Shown here piece by piece: positions 2,085 to 30,959 of a stretch of DNA of 35,084 bases. This stretch comes from Octopus bimaculoides. Lineage: Eukaryota. The stretch covers positions 20,145,351 through 20,180,434 of the forward strand of contig NC_068995.1 of assembly GCF_001194135.2 (NCBI RefSeq), in the 5' to 3' direction. Both the position numbers and the translations under genes were made by a program. A model generated the notes under the pieces. The model did not search any database. It was not told the DNA's origin and saw only the letters and a program-made list of their open reading frames with translations. Positions within the stretch are counted from its first letter, which is position 1. Each line of letters begins with the position of its first letter.

Positions 2085-2240
2085 ATTACGTTCTGAGGTC
2101 AAATGCCGCTGGGGTCGGCTTTGCCTTTCATCCTTTCTGGGACGATAAATTAAGTACCAGTTACGCTCTGGATTCAATATAATCAACTGGTTCCCCTCTC
2201 CCAAATTTCAGGCCTTGTGCCTATTGTAGAAAAGATTATA
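2085..2240 (+). mobile_element. SINE family A (tail type 2), diverged and 5' truncated
   Basis: TTACGTTCTGAGGTCAAATGCCG...GCCTTTCATCCTTTCTGGGACGATAAATTAAGTACCAG...GGCCTTGTGCCTATTGTAGAAAAG. Confidence 0.85.
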
Positions 2241-7107: not shown

Positions 7108-7301
7108 GAAACGATGAATCTCGAAGCAGATAAAGTTGTAAATAACAGCATGTAAAAATCTAAAAGAAAATCTTTGGCGAGAAAATGTCGAAGGCTGCTC
7201 CTGAGACTCGAACCACTTCTCCTCTATACACAAATCCCACAGGCAGCATTCGACATCTTCTATCCAAAGGGTTTTCTAACCCAATATTTACACGGTATTA
7301 A

Positions 7302-7530
7302 GGCGGTGAGCTGGCAGAAATGTTAGCACGCCGGACGAGATGCTTAGTGGTATTTCGTCTGTCTTTACGTTCTGAGTTCAAATTCCGCCGAGGTCGACTT
7401 TGCCTTTCATCCTTTCAGGGTCGATAAATTAAGTACAAGTTACGCACTGGCGTCGATGTAATCGACTTAATCCCTTTGTCAGTCCTTGTTTGTCCTCTCT
7501 ATGTTTAGCCCCTTGCGGACAATAAATAAA
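7302..7530 (+). mobile_element. tRNA-derived SINE family A (tail type 1)
   Basis: Head GGCGGTGAGCTGGCAGAAATGTTAGC, B box GAGTTCAAATTCC, central GCCTTTCATCCTTTCAGGGTCGATAAATTAAGTAC, tail TTTGTCCTCTCTATGTTTAGCCCC, A-rich end. Confidence 0.9.
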
Positions 7531-7533
7531 TAT

Positions 7534-7718
7534 GAAACGTTAGCATACCGGTATTTCGTCTGTCTTTACGTTCTGAGTTTAAATTCCGCCGAGGTCGATT
7601 TTGCCTTTCATCCTTTCGGGGTCGATGAATTAAGTACCAGTTGCGTACTGAGGTCGATCTAATCGACTAGTCCCCTCACCCCAAATTTCGGGCCTTGTGC
7701 CTATAGTAGAAAAGAATA
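7534..7718 (+). mobile_element. SINE family A (tail type 2), 5' shortened
   Basis: Same B box and central motif; tail CCAAATTTCGGGCCTTGTGCCTATAGTAGAAAAG. Confidence 0.9.
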
Positions 7719-7732
7719 TTTACACGTTAATA

Positions 7733-7922
7733 AGGCAGCGAGCTGGCAAAAACGTTAGCACGCCGGGCGAGATCCTTAGCAGTATTTCGTCTGTCTTTAC
7801 GTTCTGTGTTCAAATTCTGCCGAGATCAACTTGGCCTTTCATCCTTTTGACTTGGGTCGATCTAATCGACTGGCCCGCCTCCGCCAAAATTTCGGGCCTT
7901 GTGGTTAGAGTAGAAAAGAATA
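7733..7922 (+). mobile_element. SINE family A (tail type 2), internal deletion
   Basis: Full head; central motif lacks the GTCGATAAATTAAGTACCAG segment. Confidence 0.9.
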
Positions 7923-9084: not shown

Positions 9085-9225
9085 AACAATTTCAACGACC
9101 TCATTACATGACTGGTACTTTATTTAATCGATCCCGAAAGGATGAACTGCAAAGATGACTTTGATGGGATTTGAACGCAGAAGGCAAAGTTTTTGTTTTC
9201 CGATGTGCTAACGATTCAGCGAATC
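9085..9225 (-). mobile_element. SINE family A, diverged
   Basis: CTGGTACTTTATTTAATCGATCCCGAAAGGATGAA...GGGATTTGAACGCAGAA...GTGCTAACGATTC. Confidence 0.7.
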
Positions 9226-14847: not shown

Positions 14848-14985
14848 TTCAAATTTTGCCCCAAGAGCAGCCATTTTGGGGAAGGAGATGTGTCGAATAC
14901 ATCGACCCCAGTTTTTCACTGGTACTTAATTTATCGACCTTGAAAGGATGAAAGGCAAAGTAGACCACGGCGGAATTTGAACTCA
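14848..14985 (-). mobile_element. SINE family A fragment
   Basis: CTGGTACTTAATTTTATCGACCTTGAAAGGATGAAAGGCAAAGTAGACCACGGCGGAATTTGAACTCA. Confidence 0.85.
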
Positions 14986-15021
14986 CAACAACAACAATAA
15001 TAATAATAATAACAACAACAA

Positions 15022-15320
15022 CTTTCTAATATAGGCACAAAACCTGACATTGTGGAAGAGAGTGCTAGTCGATTATATCGATCCCAGTACTGAACTGCTA
15101 TGTACTTTATCGAGCACGAAAAAATGAAAGGCAATCGTGACCTAGGCGGAATTTAAACTCGGAACGTAAAGCTGGAAGAAATACCACTAATCATTTTGGC
15201 CAGCGTGTTGACGATTCTGTCAACGGCGGGTTGACACAGGGCCTGAAAGTTTCAGTAGAGATGGTCAGTTAATTACGTTGACTCCAGTGCTCAAATGGTA
15301 TTTAATTCATCAATTATGAA
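15022..15320 (-). mobile_element. SINE family A diverged copy plus adjacent 3' fragment
   Basis: CTTTATCGAGCACGAAAAAATGAAAGGC...GGCGGAATTTAAACTCGGAACGTAAAG; a second tail piece lies at 15230-15320. Confidence 0.7.
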
Positions 15321-15329
15321 ACGATTCGG

Positions 15330-15550
15330 CCTCCTCACCGCCGCCTTGATCCCACTTTCTGTAGTCCTGTGCAAAATCAACGTGCACTATGAGCTGAGGA
15401 AGAATGGACTTCGTCTCAACCACTTTCTTTTCATAGATGATTTCAAACTTATCGCAAAAAAATCAAACAGAGCCTGAAATAGAGAGACTGGTTGAGATTG
15501 TGAAAATGTGCAGCAAGGATCTAGGGATGGTATTCGATATCTCGTAGTGT
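15330..15550 (+). pseudogene. R4/Dong-type non-LTR retrotransposon, RT fragment
   Basis: LLTAALIPLSVVL...LNHFLFIDDFKLIAK followed by DLGMVFDIS*CA, matching the RT YxDD region and the GMxFGxxKCA motif of R2-superfamily elements. Confidence 0.8.
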
Positions 15551-15989: not shown

Positions 15990-16200
15990 TTTCTACTCTA
16001 GGCACAGGGCCCGAAATGTCGGTAGAGAGGGCCAGTCGATTAGATCGACCGTAGTACGCAACTGGTACTTAATTTATCAACCCCGAAAGGATGAAAGACA
16101 ATTTCGACCTCCACGGAATTTGAACTCAGAACGTCAAGGCGGGCGAAATGCCGTTAAGCATTTCACCCGGCGTGTTAACGATTTTGCCAGCTCGCCGCCC
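15990..16200 (-). mobile_element. SINE family A (tail type 2), full length
   Basis: Reverse complement of head (...TTTTGCCAGCTCGCCGCC), B box and central motif; tail abuts the TAA array. Confidence 0.9.
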
Positions 16201-16282: not shown

Positions 16283-16822
16283 AGTGAAAGAAGGAACATG
16301 GCAGAATATTTGGTAAGCAGCAAAGAAGACATGCTACAGTATGCTGCTAATGCAGAAGGATTTACCAAAAATGGACTTGAGAGTGCTCATGGTTTCTGAT
16401 CACGAATAGCCAACAAGAATGAAGTATATGGAATCACACGATCAGTTCCACCGTGAAACTAACAACTTAAAAGACCAGAAACTATCATGGATGTAGCTCA
16501 GCAAGGGTGACCTAAAAAGGAATACCGAAACCCTACTCATCACTGCCCAGGATCAGGCATTGAATACCAACTCAATGAAAAGGGATATATACCGCAAAGG
16601 CGCAACGAACCTCTGCAGAATGTATGGGAAGAGTGTTGAAAGCATGACTCACATTGTTAGTGCTTGTGAAAGTCTTGTACAGAAAGAGTACAAGCGCAGA
16701 CATTACAAGGCTGCTCAAAACCTTCACTGGCTACTATGCCGGAAGTATAGATACGAGTTAATGGTACCAACGTACACCGGATAAGGTAATGGACGAAAAG
16801 GAGAAGGCAAAAGTACTCTGGG
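16283..16822 (+). pseudogene. R4/Dong-type element, thumb and CCHC zinc-knuckle fragment
   Basis: GDLKRNTETLLITAQDQALNTNSMK...LCRMYGKSVESMTHIVSACESLVQKEYKRRHYKAAQNLHWLLCRKY, then WYQRTPDKVMDEKEKAKVLWD; one knuckle Cys is mutated to Tyr. Confidence 0.85.
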
Positions 16823-20250: not shown

Positions 20251-20821
20251 AAAAAAACAGCAAAAAAAAAAGTGCCGCTCAGAGAGATAGTGCCATAACT
20301 GAGAGAAATGTTTGTAAGTGGTTTGCTAGGTCAGGTGTGAAGTTTTTGCTCTGGGAGACCATGAATATTCCGACAGACCTATATTTGTTGACGTTGACCA
20401 AATCTAAATACTAATCAAAAATAATCCATGTTACACCACACGAGATATCACCGAGATATTCCACATATCTCATATGAACGATATAAAGTATTTAAAAACC
20501 CTTGATCACGTGAATCCCTGTGTTGATTGAGAACCTCATAATGTAACGGAAAATAATTCAGAGGACTGCATTTCCTTCTGGAATTCTCTGCTCGAACACA
20601 GCAAAAACTTCCCAATTTTCAAAAAAACGATCACTGATGAGGGAAAATGTGGGGTGAGAAATCTCTTGAAGAAAACGAAAAGAATCACTTATAATCACTC
20701 CAAAAGCTGGCCAGTATCCGAAGATGGTAACACCCATCGTGTGTGATTAGAAGGGTACAGTGTGTTATGACCTTCAAAATTAGATATTGAGTTAAGACAA
20801 TAATTGTTCCTAATTAGACAT

Positions 20822-20995
20822 AAAGGAGGCAATCAATGAAAAACGTCCAAAATTAGCCAACCGGAAGGGTCTCGTCTTCTTTCAAGAAACGCTAGATCTC
20901 ATGTCTCCTTACAGACTTGGCAGAAATTGGTACAGCTTGGTTGGGATATCCTTCAATACCCATCGTACTCACCTGACCCTGCACCTATGAATTAT
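20822..20995 (+). pseudogene. Mariner transposase catalytic-domain remnant (frameshifted)
   Basis: Translates as KEAINEKRPKLANRKGLVFFQE/NARSHVSLQTWQKLVQLGWDILQYPSYSPDPAPMNY, matching the mariner HDNARPH and WEVLPHPPYSPDLAP motifs with one frameshift. Confidence 0.9.
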
Positions 20996-21600
20996 TTATC
21001 TGCAAAATTTTCGTAATATGAAGAAAGTCAGTTCTTTGGAAGATTGTAAAAACCATTTAAACAGTTCATGTCATGAAAAGATGCGAATTTCTGGAGGATG
21101 GGATAAGCTGGTTCAAACATGGCGAAAGATAGTGGAACAAAATGGGACACATGTAACTGAATAAAGATATGTAAAAGTATCTAAATATTGTTTTTCAAGT
21201 TTATTTTTTAAAATGATACGACCTTTTGTTCCAAGTCAATATCTGTGTGTGTGAGTGTGTCTATATATGTATGTATATGCGTGTGTATGAATGCATGTAT
21301 GTACACACACGCATATATATGCACACACATACACCTATGTATATATTTATGCATGCGTACATGTATGCATGTACGTATGTACATATATATGAGTATTCTT
21401 GCATGTGCTGTAAGTGTTGAGCAATAATATGTTCATGCGTAAGCAAACCGGAACGCACACGCAGAAAACATACACACTCACACTGAAGCACACACACATA
21501 TGCATATCCAATACATACACACAATATATATACATATATATATAATATATATATATATATAAAGTACATATATGGTATATATATATTTATGGTTTATTTA

Positions 21601-23660: not shown

Positions 23661-24248
23661 ACAAGGACAGACAGAAGCATACGTGTATATATCTGGGTGT
23701 CTTCTATTTTGTCATTGATATATTGGCATCTATCTATCTACCTATCTCTCTCTCTCTCTCTTTCTACATATATGTGTGTGTATGTGTGTATACAGACCTC
23801 ATATACCTTCTCTCTCTCTCCCTCTCTACTATATATATAGTAGTTTTATAGGATCACGCGCTGTAACAGCGCGTTACAGCATCCACCATTTTTTGGTGAC
23901 TCCCTACTAACCCTAGCGGATGACATCTCTGCACCACTTAGGTGAACGCCTTACCCAAATCCTTGCGTCTGTTATGGTAGTCGTTGCTGGTGAGGTTTTC
24001 ATCAAGTCGTAGTGCAAATCCTTAACCTTTTTTAGTCGCCTTTTTACAATACCCAGGGAAAACAATGGGTCTATGTTTTGATATACCAGTTCCCAATAAA
24101 AAAGAATAAACGTGAAATGAAGTGTTTGCTTAAAAATACAGCACACTTCCGGTCCCGAGAATAAATCGCAAGATCTAATAATCGTGAATGCATCATACTA
24201 TCCACTAGGCCGCGCGCACGCACACACACACACACACACACACACAAA

Positions 24249-24480
24249 GGCGGCGAGCTGGCAGAAACGTTAGCACACCGGGCGAAATGCTTAGCGGTAT
24301 TTCGTCTGCCGCTATGTTCTGAGTTCAAATTCCGCCGAGGTCGACTTTGCCTTTCATCCTTTCGGGGTCGATTAAATAAGTAGCAGTTACGCACTGGGGT
24401 CGGTATAATCGACTTAATCCGTTTGTCTGTCCTTGTTTGTCCCCTCTGTGTGTAGCCCCTTGTGGGTAGTAAAGAAATAA
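24249..24480 (+). mobile_element. SINE family A (tail type 1), full length, little decay
   Basis: GGCGGCGAGCTGGCAGAAACGTTAGC...GAGTTCAAATTCCGCCGAGGTCGACTTTGCCTTTCATCCTTTCGGGGTCG...GTAGCCCCTTGTGGGTAGTAAAGAAATAA; (CA)n on both sides. Confidence 0.92.
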
Positions 24481-24667
24481 CACACACACACATATATATG
24501 CATGCAGGTAATCTTTATCTCCAGCTTAACGTGGAGGCTCTGTTAGAACACAGAACACTTCGTTATTTACTTTCAGAGGACTTCTCATACACACGACGTA
24601 AACAAGAGTGCTTATATGCACCACCACATGAGAGATAGTCTCAAAGCAAATAATGCTATCTAACACA

Positions 24668-27357: not shown

Positions 27358-27414
27358 AACTACGATAACTTCATTCAAAACACTTGCTCGACTCCAGTAT
27401 TAGACTGATAGTAA

Positions 27415-27625
27415 GACGGCCAGCTGGCAGAATTGATAACACGCCGGACAAAATGCTTAACGGCATTTCATCCGTTATTACGTTCTGAATTCAAATTCAG
27501 CCGAGGTCGACTTTTCATTTCATCATTTCGGGGTCGATAGAATGAGTACCAGTTGGACATTGGTACCGATGTAATCGATTTACCCGCTTCTTCGAAATTT
27601 CTGGCCGGCCTTGTACTAAAAAATT
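27415..27625 (+). mobile_element. SINE family A
   Basis: GACGGCCAGCTGGCAGAATTG...GAATTCAAATTCAGCCGAGGTCGAC...TTTCGGGGTCGATAGAATGAGTACCAG. Confidence 0.85.
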
Positions 27626-29419: not shown

Positions 29420-29995
29420 NNNNNNNNNNNNNNNNNNNNNNNNNNNNNNNNNNNNNNNNNNNNNNNNNNNNNNNNNNNNNNNNNNNNNNNNNNNNNNNNN
29501 NNNNNNNNNNNNNNNNNNNNNNNNNNNNNNNNNNNNNNNNNNNNNNNNNNNNNNNNNNNNNNNNNNNNNNNNNNNNNNNNNNNNNNNNNNNNNNNNNNNN
29601 NNNNNNNNNNNNNNNNNNNNNNNNNNNNNNNNNNNNNNNNNNNNNNNNNNNNNNNNNNNNNNNNNNNNNNNNNNNNNNNNNNNNNNNNNNNNNNNNNNNN
29701 NNNNNNNNNNNNNNNNNNNNNNNNNNNNNNNNNNNNNNNNNNNNNNNNNNNNNNNNNNNNNNNNNNNNNNNNNNNNNNNNNNNNNNNNNNNNNNNNNNNN
29801 NNNNNNNNNNNNNNNNNNNNNNNNNNNNNNNNNNNNNNNNNNNNNNNNNNNNNNNNNNNNNNNNNNNNNNNNNNNNNNNNNNNNNNNNNNNNNNNNNNNN
29901 NNNNNNNNNNNNNNNNNNNNNNNNNNNNNNNNNNNNNNNNNNNNNNNNNNNNNNNNNNNNNNNNNNNNNNNNNNNNNNNNNNNNNNNNNNNNNNN

Positions 29996-30040
<45 letters not shown>

Positions 30041-30122
30041 TTCAGTCTCCTGTTCTGGCAATGTTTCTTTTGTATATCCGTAGTGGGGAAATGAATCGTT
30101 GCTGTCTCTTGCGATTGAGCGT

Positions 30123-30169
30123 CCATCATTGACAAGACCAAGGAAGGTCGAAATCACGTGATCTGGTGG
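30123..30169 (+). ncRNA. Type I hammerhead ribozyme, copy 1
   Basis: Stem I CCAUCA/UGGUGG (6 bp); core UUGACAA (U3:A8 can form the tertiary pair); stem II GACC-AAGGAA-GGUC; GAA; stem III within palindrome AUCACGUGAU; AUC cleavage triplet, predicted cut after C30163. Confidence 0.8.
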
Positions 30170-30437
30170 TTTCTACACCGAAGATGACAGGGATTTATCT
30201 CCTGAACCACAAGCCAATATAAGAGTTTTTCCCATAACTACCGCAGTATAGTCTGTTCCAACAGAACATCCACGTTTAAATGGGGATAAATATGACTTCT
30301 CGTTGTTAATATGGCTTCTGTCGCTATTATATATTTTTTTAGCAGGCTCACTGGCCAATAGCGACACCAGTACCCGTTCTAGCACCGTTTTCCTATATAT
30401 CACTGGCGGGGAGATGGAACGGTGCTTCCGCTAATGG

Positions 30438-30498
30438 CCGAGCATCGATTATTGATGAGACCCAGGAAGGTCGAAATCACCTGATCTGGTGGTCTCGG
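30438..30498 (+). ncRNA. Type I hammerhead ribozyme, copy 2
   Basis: Core UUGAUGA (30452-30458); stem II GACC-CAGGAA-GGUC; GAA; stem III AUCA-CC-UGAU; AUC triplet, cut after C30486. Proximal stem I CGAUUA/UGGUGG is weakened; distal helix CCGAG(30438-42)/CUCGG(30494-98) is present. Confidence 0.8.
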
Positions 30499-30959
30499 TG
30501 CCGGAGATAGCGGGGATTTATCTCCCCACAAGCGATATAAACAGGAATGCATTATGAAGCAAAAGCTTATGGTATCTACCGTAGTAAAGTTTGTTGTAAT
30601 GGGGATAAATGTGGGGATAAATGTTATCTTCCGGTATTTATACTGCCTCTGTCACTTTTAAATAAATGTGTGTGTGTGTGTGAGTGTGTGTGAATGTACT
30701 TGGACATAAATAGGTATATATTTATACACCTCTGTGTGAGAGACAGCATGGGTATATCTGTTTGTCTACACATACACACACCCACATAAACACACACAAA
30801 TGCACAGACATATATATTTGTATGTGTGTGTGTATATATATATTACATGTGTGTCTGCTTGTATATATGTAATCATCAGGCGATACAAATACTCAGAGCA
30901 GTTTAATGATAAAATTATGTCTCGGCTAAAAGTACCGGAGTACACTGCAATAGATTTCA

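Follow-up and report, generated by a model that had tools for sequence, protein, structure and literature searches.

We analysed a 35,084-nt stretch of the Octopus bimaculoides genome (NCBI RefSeq assembly GCF_001194135.2, contig NC_068995.1, positions 20,145,351 to 20,180,434 of the forward strand), hereafter the window, and describe a short tandem array in which both repeat units carry a type I hammerhead ribozyme motif. The array consists of two direct, diverged copies of a unit of ~323 bp and lies between two microsatellites. The features of the array and its immediate surroundings, in window coordinates, are as follows.

29420-29995: assembly gap (576 N), upstream of the (TA)n tract
29996-30039, no strand assigned: (TA)n microsatellite, adjoining the left end of the array
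30049-30664, plus strand: tandem array of 1.9 units
30049-30372, plus strand: repeat unit 1, full, 324 nt, aligned in register with unit 2 in the ribozyme block as well as in the parts on its 5′ and 3′ sides
30373-30664, plus strand: repeat unit 2, 292 nt, without the last ~32 nt of the unit; similarity stops at 30664, right before the (TG)n tract
30667-30697, no strand assigned: (TG)n microsatellite, adjoining the right end of the array

Architecture of the tandem array

Comparison of the two units by BLAST returned an 86-nt block of 81% identity (30117-30202 versus 30440-30525, E 3.5e-15) which includes the ribozyme. The flanks 5′ and 3′ of this block are also aligned in register, with z values of about 8 and 9 against shuffled sequences, and therefore the duplication extends over 30049-30372 and 30373-30664. 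A preliminary description of the locus, made from the sequence alone, had proposed a diverged tandem duplication of ~323 nt, and the in-register flanks confirm it beyond the ribozyme itself. Since unit 2 is missing ~32 nt, the array amounts to 1.9 units. The left side of the array is only 44 bp from the 576-N gap and therefore more units may be present upstream of the (TA)n tract. The GC content of the array is 43.3%, compared to 36.8% for the whole window. As also described earlier, no open reading frame (ORF) lies between the hammerheads; the longest ORF in the array, on the minus strand, has only 76 amino acids, and no credible relative came up for those repeat ORFs that were searched.

Hammerhead motifs in the two units

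Three helices are arranged around the core in both copies of the motif. Helix I is open while helices II and III are closed by loops, which defines the type I topology. The motifs and the elements predicted from them, all on the plus strand, are listed below.

30123-30169, plus strand: hammerhead copy 1, type I; helix I 6/6 bp, helix II 4/4, helix III 3/3
30153-30162, plus strand: helix III region of copy 1, AUCACGUGAU, palindromic over all of its 10 nt (10/10)
30163-30164, plus strand: predicted cleavage site 1, after C17 = 30163, from hammerhead numbering
30164-30486, plus strand: predicted 323-nt monomer, the interval between the two predicted sites and a candidate circular RNA (circRNA) after ligation
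30437-30499, plus strand: extended hammerhead of copy 2, with outer stem I GCCGA (30437-41) / UCGGU (30495-99) and internal loop GCAU / UC, from the cmscan alignment to the Rfam model HH9
30446-30492, plus strand: hammerhead copy 2, with the layout of copy 1 shifted by +323; helix I 5/6 bp (one mismatch)
30476-30485, plus strand: helix III region of copy 2, AUCACCUGAU, palindromic at 8/10 positions and forming 9/10 pairs with copy 1
30486-30487, plus strand: predicted cleavage site 2, after C17 = 30486, from hammerhead numbering

Helix I of copy 1 is formed by the 5′ strand CCAUCA (30123-28) and the 3′ strand UGGUGG (30164-69). The core reads UUGACAA (30129-35), with U3:A8 and C at position 7, and is completed by GAA (30150-52). 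Helix II is GACC/GGUC with the loop AAGGAA (30136-49), helix III is AUC/GAU with the loop ACGU (30153-62) and C17 is the residue 30163. In copy 2 the core reads UUGAUGA (U3·G8), helix II is that of copy 1 with the loop CAGGAA, the loop of helix III is ACCU and C17 is the residue 30486. The invariant U4 G5 A6, A9, G12 A13 A14, the A15.1-U16.1 pair and H17 are kept in both copies, and C17 is present within an AUC triplet in both. The earlier placement of two type I hammerheads in direct orientation, with AUC sites at 30163 and 30486 that are 323 nt apart, was thus exact on reading of the sequence.

Two side observations concern short motifs of the array. A 12-nt motif, TGGGGATAAATG, is tandemly duplicated within unit 2 (30600-30624). 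The same GGGGATAAAT motif is present once in unit 1 (30283-30292). Close to its 5′ end, the predicted monomer carries AUUUAUCUCC, to which this motif is complementary.

Conservation of the ribozyme between the units

The ribozyme had been described as the best-conserved part of the duplication, and alignment of the two units bears this out. Within the hammerhead 41 of 47 positions are identical (87%), compared to 146 of 234 elsewhere (62%; Fisher p=6.6e-4), and the Kimura two-parameter (K2P) distance is 0.14 within the hammerhead and 0.56 outside. Absence of any excess conservation of the ribozyme would have spoken against the earlier proposal; compared between the two units, the excess is present. 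Of the six differences in the hammerhead, two are in the core (N7 and position 8, opposite to U3), two in the loops (the first base of loop 2 and one base of loop 3) and two in helix I, where one is a C-to-U change retaining a G·U pair and the other breaks a pair. Five of these six are located at tolerant places and the otherwise invariant core bases are the same in both copies. This pattern is not well explained by neutral decay acting evenly on a dimer that was homogeneous at the start. It may be that the units were already different at insertion and the ribozyme was kept by selection in the family; alternatively, the ribozyme may have been maintained at this locus.

Recognition of the motifs by descriptors and covariance models

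The preliminary description had named a descriptor search and the Rfam hammerhead models as means of checking the motifs. A relaxed type I descriptor, permitting C3:G8, U3:A8 or U3·G8, was run on both strands of the window and matched exactly the two sites and nothing else. The same descriptor gave 7 matches in 540 Mb of first-order Markov sequence of the window composition, which corresponds to ~4e-4 chance matches per window. We also built a covariance model solely from four validated retrozyme hammerheads (coral, mussel and two of axolotl, as printed in the supplement to PMC7229834), and the search of the window was made with the filters off. Both motifs were recovered over the full length of the model, copy 1 as the best match (30123-30169, 27.4 bits, E 7.4e-6) and copy 2 as the second (30446-30492, 18.3 bits, E 3.5e-3), with the third match at E 0.76. 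Some features are present beyond what the descriptor demands, namely the palindromic helix III, the 6-nt purine-rich loop 2, the outer stem I of copy 2 and the excess conservation. Motif 2 is a copy of motif 1 and the two therefore count as one ancestral event; on these sequence grounds, that ancestral hammerhead is not a chance match.

Among the Rfam families, Hammerhead_HH9 (RF02275) aligned to copy 2 over the full model (23.9 bits, E 0.0018) when the 705-nt region was searched in E-value mode. This match on copy 2 is weak; no model reaches its gathering score and copy 1 goes unreported.

Helix III and the energetics of the dimer

The helix III hairpin alone has a predicted energy of 0 kcal/mol. 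Duplexes of the same region are predicted at -12.9 kcal/mol for copy 1 with copy 1 and at -7.1 kcal/mol for copy 1 with copy 2. Since helix III is unstable as a hairpin, cleavage would require a dimeric conformation. Energies were compared for a dimer transcript covering 30100-30520 (421 nt). The minimum free energy (MFE) of this transcript is -129.6 kcal/mol, the best structure with two single hammerheads has -107.0 kcal/mol and the full double hammerhead has -114.2 kcal/mol, which makes the double hammerhead 7 kcal/mol better than two single ones. The half structure, in which the copy 1 core acts on the copy 2 site, has -125.4 kcal/mol and is just 4 kcal/mol over the MFE. Folded as a circle, the interval 30164-30486 has a predicted energy of -84.6 kcal/mol with 55% of its residues paired, and z = -2.1 against 300 dinucleotide shuffles.

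Comparison with known hammerhead elements

Metazoan retrozymes without long terminal repeats (LTRs) are tandem repeats of ~150-450 bp, present as dimers to large multimers, with a type I hammerhead in each unit, a GC content of <45-50% and no LTR, primer binding site (PBS) or polypurine tract (PPT) (PMC7229834). They are transcribed, self-cleaved and circularised, most likely by tRNA ligase, and are thought to be mobilised by Penelope-like elements (PLEs) (PMC7229834). In the canonical metazoan type I hammerhead an unstable helix III blocks efficient cleavage of the single motif, and a nearby second copy allows an active dimer to form (PMC4209133).

The octopus locus resembles these elements in many respects. 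Retrozymes of coral (Amil224), mussel (Mg353) and axolotl (Ax330/Ax353) have non-coding tandem units of 220-390 bp, and the 323-bp unit of the octopus is likewise non-coding; the axolotl units are of ~330-350 bp and dimer-dependent, similar to the layout seen here. Newt 'satellite 2' repeats are a historical example of the same kind. A 6-bp helix I, a 4-bp helix II, a loop 2 of 5-6 nt and a palindromic weak helix III are shared with the validated retrozymes. The GC content of 43% and the lack of an ORF or LTR fit the retrozyme description as well (PBS and PPT were not specifically searched). Differences are also seen. The 3:8 pair is U:A or U·G and not C:G, and outside the ribozyme the octopus unit has no sequence similarity to the published retrozymes. 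The preliminary description had taken the locus for a retrozyme; the anatomy does match that of metazoan non-LTR retrozymes (PMC7229834), while the core, with U3, is non-standard.

Hammerheads of the PLE pseudo-LTRs (pLTRs) share with the octopus motifs the type I topology, dimers formed via a palindromic helix III, the tandem arrangement, the association of insertions with microsatellites and a natural U3-A8 covariation (Schistosoma). However, these motifs flank an ORF of ~3 kb for reverse transcriptase (RT) and GIY-YIG endonuclease, whereas only 323 nt and no such ORF separate the octopus hammerheads. The PLE motifs are of a 'minimal' type, with a helix II of 6-8 bp, a helix I of 2-5 bp and a helix III that is absent or of 1 bp (PMC4209133), in contrast to the 6/4/3 bp of helices I/II/III in the octopus.

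With the Rfam family HH9 / Hammerhead_1 (clan CL00010), the alignment of copy 2 over the full length includes the outer stem I and the internal loop. The members of HH9 are single, conserved intronic motifs of amniotes, whereas the octopus motifs are in tandem. LTR retrozymes of plants (PMC4918200) share the concept of a non-autonomous, hammerhead-bounded retroelement yielding circRNA, but they have type III hammerheads, LTRs, PBS/PPT, units of ~600-1000 nt and a high GC content, none of which applies here.

Related sequences and other repeats in the window

A 62-nt fragment on the minus strand (24508-24570) is related to 30235-30296 of unit 1, with a local alignment score of 44 compared to a mean of 20.6 and a maximum of 29 for shuffles. 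No hammerhead is located nearby and the fragment adjoins a microsatellite and a SINE-like (short interspersed nuclear element) copy. This likeness hints that the repeat sequence is not unique in the genome.

Outside the window, the exact pattern of the ribozyme segments matched nothing in viral, metagenome or prokaryotic genome contigs. A looser pattern of helix II and loop 2 matched six metagenome loci. The rest of the motif is absent from them and the three scanned with Rfam (L001, L002, L004) contain no hammerhead, hence these were regarded as chance matches. A 50-amino-acid antisense ORF over copy 2 had no candidate relative, and exact look-ups of three ORFs of the window found none on record. 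An 83-amino-acid antisense frame, searched with HMMER against 1.84 billion representatives, had a single match (P0001), a protein of 490 amino acids made up of 8.5 tandem repeats of 57 amino acids (171-nt period). This match was rejected as a repeat-inflated score because BLASTP gives no alignment between the protein and the antisense frame and the protein is not on record.

The window as a whole is of draft quality, with 12 N gaps accounting for 4,041 bases; (TA)n, (TG)n/(CA)n and related microsatellites predominate in it. It contains at least 10 copies, of 77-89% identity, of a SINE-like interspersed repeat that is ~230 bp long and octopus-like in appearance:

24240-24475 (reference), 7300-7515, 7543-7668, 7732-7847, 27413-27554 and 2087-2188, plus strand: SINE-like copies
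16034-16199, 14892-14990, 15067-15219 and 9096-9182, minus strand: SINE-like copies

The only database relative of the SINE-like ORF is one 543-bp ENA metagenome contig (L009). Decayed fragments resembling a mariner/Tc1-type transposase (LGWDILQYPSYSPDPAP, WDKLVQTWRKIVEQNG) were recognized by eye in three frames of 20531-21161 (plus strand), a region for which Pfam gave no match at E<=0.01. Fragments at 15259-15474 and 16497-16781 (plus strand) resemble the RT of non-LTR retrotransposons in having a FIDD motif and a Cys/His tail. ORFs on two long ENA contigs of eukaryote-like character (L007, L008) match this tail at 53-62% amino acid identity, and these contigs have no nucleotide repeats in common with the window.

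Nature of the locus

The DNA itself shows the hammerhead motif with its architecture, the tandem duplication and a ribozyme that is conserved in excess of its surroundings. We consider it likely that the locus represents a non-LTR retrozyme of the metazoan kind, in the form of a genomic copy of a tandem repeat that bears hammerheads, does not code for protein and is inserted between two microsatellites. Microsatellites have been reported as favoured targets of canonical PLEs and Naiads, and the array lies between (TA)n and (TG)n. The copy, partly decayed in appearance, is probably an old one, and any activity would be weak at best.

Several observations weigh against the retrozyme reading. The normally invariant C3 is replaced by U in both copies, and copy 2 combines a U·G wobble at 3:8 with one mismatch in helix I. 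Because position 3 is U instead of C, a strict CUGANGA descriptor finds nothing in the window. At the gathering thresholds of Rfam there are no hammerhead matches in the whole window; in HH9 copy 2, with 23.9 bits, stays below the gathering score of 52 and copy 1 does not appear among the matches, these low scores being due to the variant core with U at position 3 in both copies. Unconstrained MFE folds of each motif do not contain the hammerhead, because GAAAUCAC is able to pair with GUGGUUUC. Such folds are common for dimer-dependent hammerheads and are not decisive. The predicted circle is only modestly structured, whereas the published retrozyme circles are described as highly self-paired. 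In contrast to the published retrozymes, only 1.9 strongly diverged units are present, the divergence between the two being ~33% overall, and Tandem Repeats Finder (TRF) does not detect the 323-nt period since the units are too diverged. No second full copy of the unit is present elsewhere in the window, and none came up in the sequence collections searched, which contain no cephalopod genome. A Pfam search of the non-low-complexity ORFs of ~13-35 kb, apart from those at 22.9-24.5 kb, found no RT or GIY-YIG domain and nothing at E<=0.01. Finally, a 2026 preprint defines retrozymes operationally by a TRF repeat together with a canonical or minimal descriptor in at least two consecutive units, and the locus would fail this pipeline as an active retrozyme because both TRF and the canonical descriptor miss it.

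The 3:8 pair is central to the question of whether the motifs could cleave. Mutational studies lead to the expectation that U3·G8 reduces activity, and in such work a double change at 3:8 keeps activity better than either single change. In copy 1, U3:A8 is a Watson-Crick substitute for C3-G8 and the free position 7 is C. The core U3 U4 G5 A6 C7 G8 A9 has been cited among the natural hammerhead variants, and U3-A8 covariation is found in ~1,300 natural motifs of PLEs in Schistosoma (PMC4209133). Considering U3:A8 in one copy and U3·G8 in the other together with these natural variants, it seems plausible that copy 1 is a ribozyme and that copy 2 is impaired. Decay of an ancestral CG by CpG mutation was considered as a possible origin of the difference between C7A8 and U7G8; the units show no depletion of CpG, with an observed/expected ratio of about 0.9.

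That the array is a dead relic, descended from a hammerhead-bearing repeat but with ribozymes that no longer cleave and thus an inert fossil, is a serious possibility, if in our judgement a somewhat doubtful one. It is suggested by the shortening of unit 2 and by the overall divergence of ~33%, which rises to 38% outside the hammerhead (K2P 0.56). The occurrence of U3 in both copies, the U·G pair and helix I mismatch of copy 2, the sub-threshold Rfam scores and the cost of 15-23 kcal/mol for the hammerhead fold relative to the MFE of the dimer transcript point in the same direction. However, the decay that affects the remainder of the unit has largely passed by the hammerhead segment (p=6.6e-4), the changes it has accepted are mostly structure-tolerant and copy 1 keeps all of its helices as well as a Watson-Crick 3:8 pair of a natural kind. 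At the other extreme, the locus could be one member of a still-active family with U3:A8 as its normal core and abundant circRNAs of ~323 nt, in which case selection for self-cleavage, and not chance, would account for a ribozyme so well conserved within a heavily diverged array; we regard this as unlikely.

It is rather improbable that the array is the remnant of an autonomous PLE, the repeats being hammerhead-carrying pLTRs left in tandem after loss of the RT/endonuclease ORF. pLTRs do carry type I hammerheads, PLE insertions are partial tandems that favour microsatellites and the 2026 preprint derives animal retrozymes from the pLTRs of PLEs. However, no remnant of RT or GIY-YIG was found between the repeats, where the interval is 323 nt, or beside them by Pfam on the ORFs of 13-35 kb. 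The 6/4 bp layout is moreover the canonical one associated with retrozymes, whereas the PLE motifs are minimal.

We hold it as very unlikely that the motif is a host-domesticated, single-locus hammerhead acting on a host transcript, like the intronic HH9/HH10 of amniotes. HH9 is indeed the best Rfam match and the ribozyme is conserved above its surroundings, but the HH9 score is far under the family threshold, and the motif is located in a tandem repeat between microsatellites with no recognisable gene, exon or coding signal nearby. Ribozymes of the HH9 type are isolated and not tandem (PMC7229834). A chance hammerhead-like sequence in an ordinary minisatellite or segmental duplication is scarcely credible: the core is non-canonical, curated models do not call the motif and motif 2, having been copied by duplication, is not independent of motif 1, but against this stand the ~4e-4 matches expected per window from the relaxed descriptor, the E of 7e-6 from an independent covariance model and the presence of features that no descriptor demanded (palindromic helix III, purine-rich loop 2, outer stem I and excess conservation).

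Proposed mechanism

For a repeat of the retrozyme kind, which remains our preferred reading, a life cycle can be proposed in which all of the biochemical steps are drawn by analogy with the known elements. Read-through transcription of the array would give rise to an oligomeric RNA. With a helix III too weak to form a hairpin, neighbouring hammerheads would pair via the palindromic helix III region into a double hammerhead. The released RNA may be circularised by the host tRNA ligase (RtcB type), and the reverse transcriptase of an autonomous, most likely Penelope-like, element could use the circle as its template. Tandem cDNA copies would then integrate elsewhere in the genome.

Significance

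Retrozymes have been reported in cnidarians, mussel and salamanders, and bioinformatically in rotifers, flatworms, annelids, crustaceans and insects (PMC7229834). Hammerhead repeats are already known from cnidarians, molluscs (mussels), flatworms, annelids, arthropods, rotifers, amphibians and other vertebrates. Cephalopods are not named in PMC7229834 or in its supplement, and full-text searches combining hammerhead or retrozyme with octopus or cephalopod returned nothing relevant. This agrees with the preliminary description, in which no such family was known from octopus. Since retrozymes have already been reported in molluscs and many other invertebrate phyla, the novelty of the locus is modest, and the finding is an incremental addition which brings no new principle. 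If confirmed genome-wide, it would add an animal lineage, apparently the cephalopods, to the hosts of circRNA retroelements processed by hammerheads. It would also provide a natural type I hammerhead of canonical architecture with a U3:A8 core, an example that would be useful for ribozyme descriptors and Rfam models, which at present miss such a motif.

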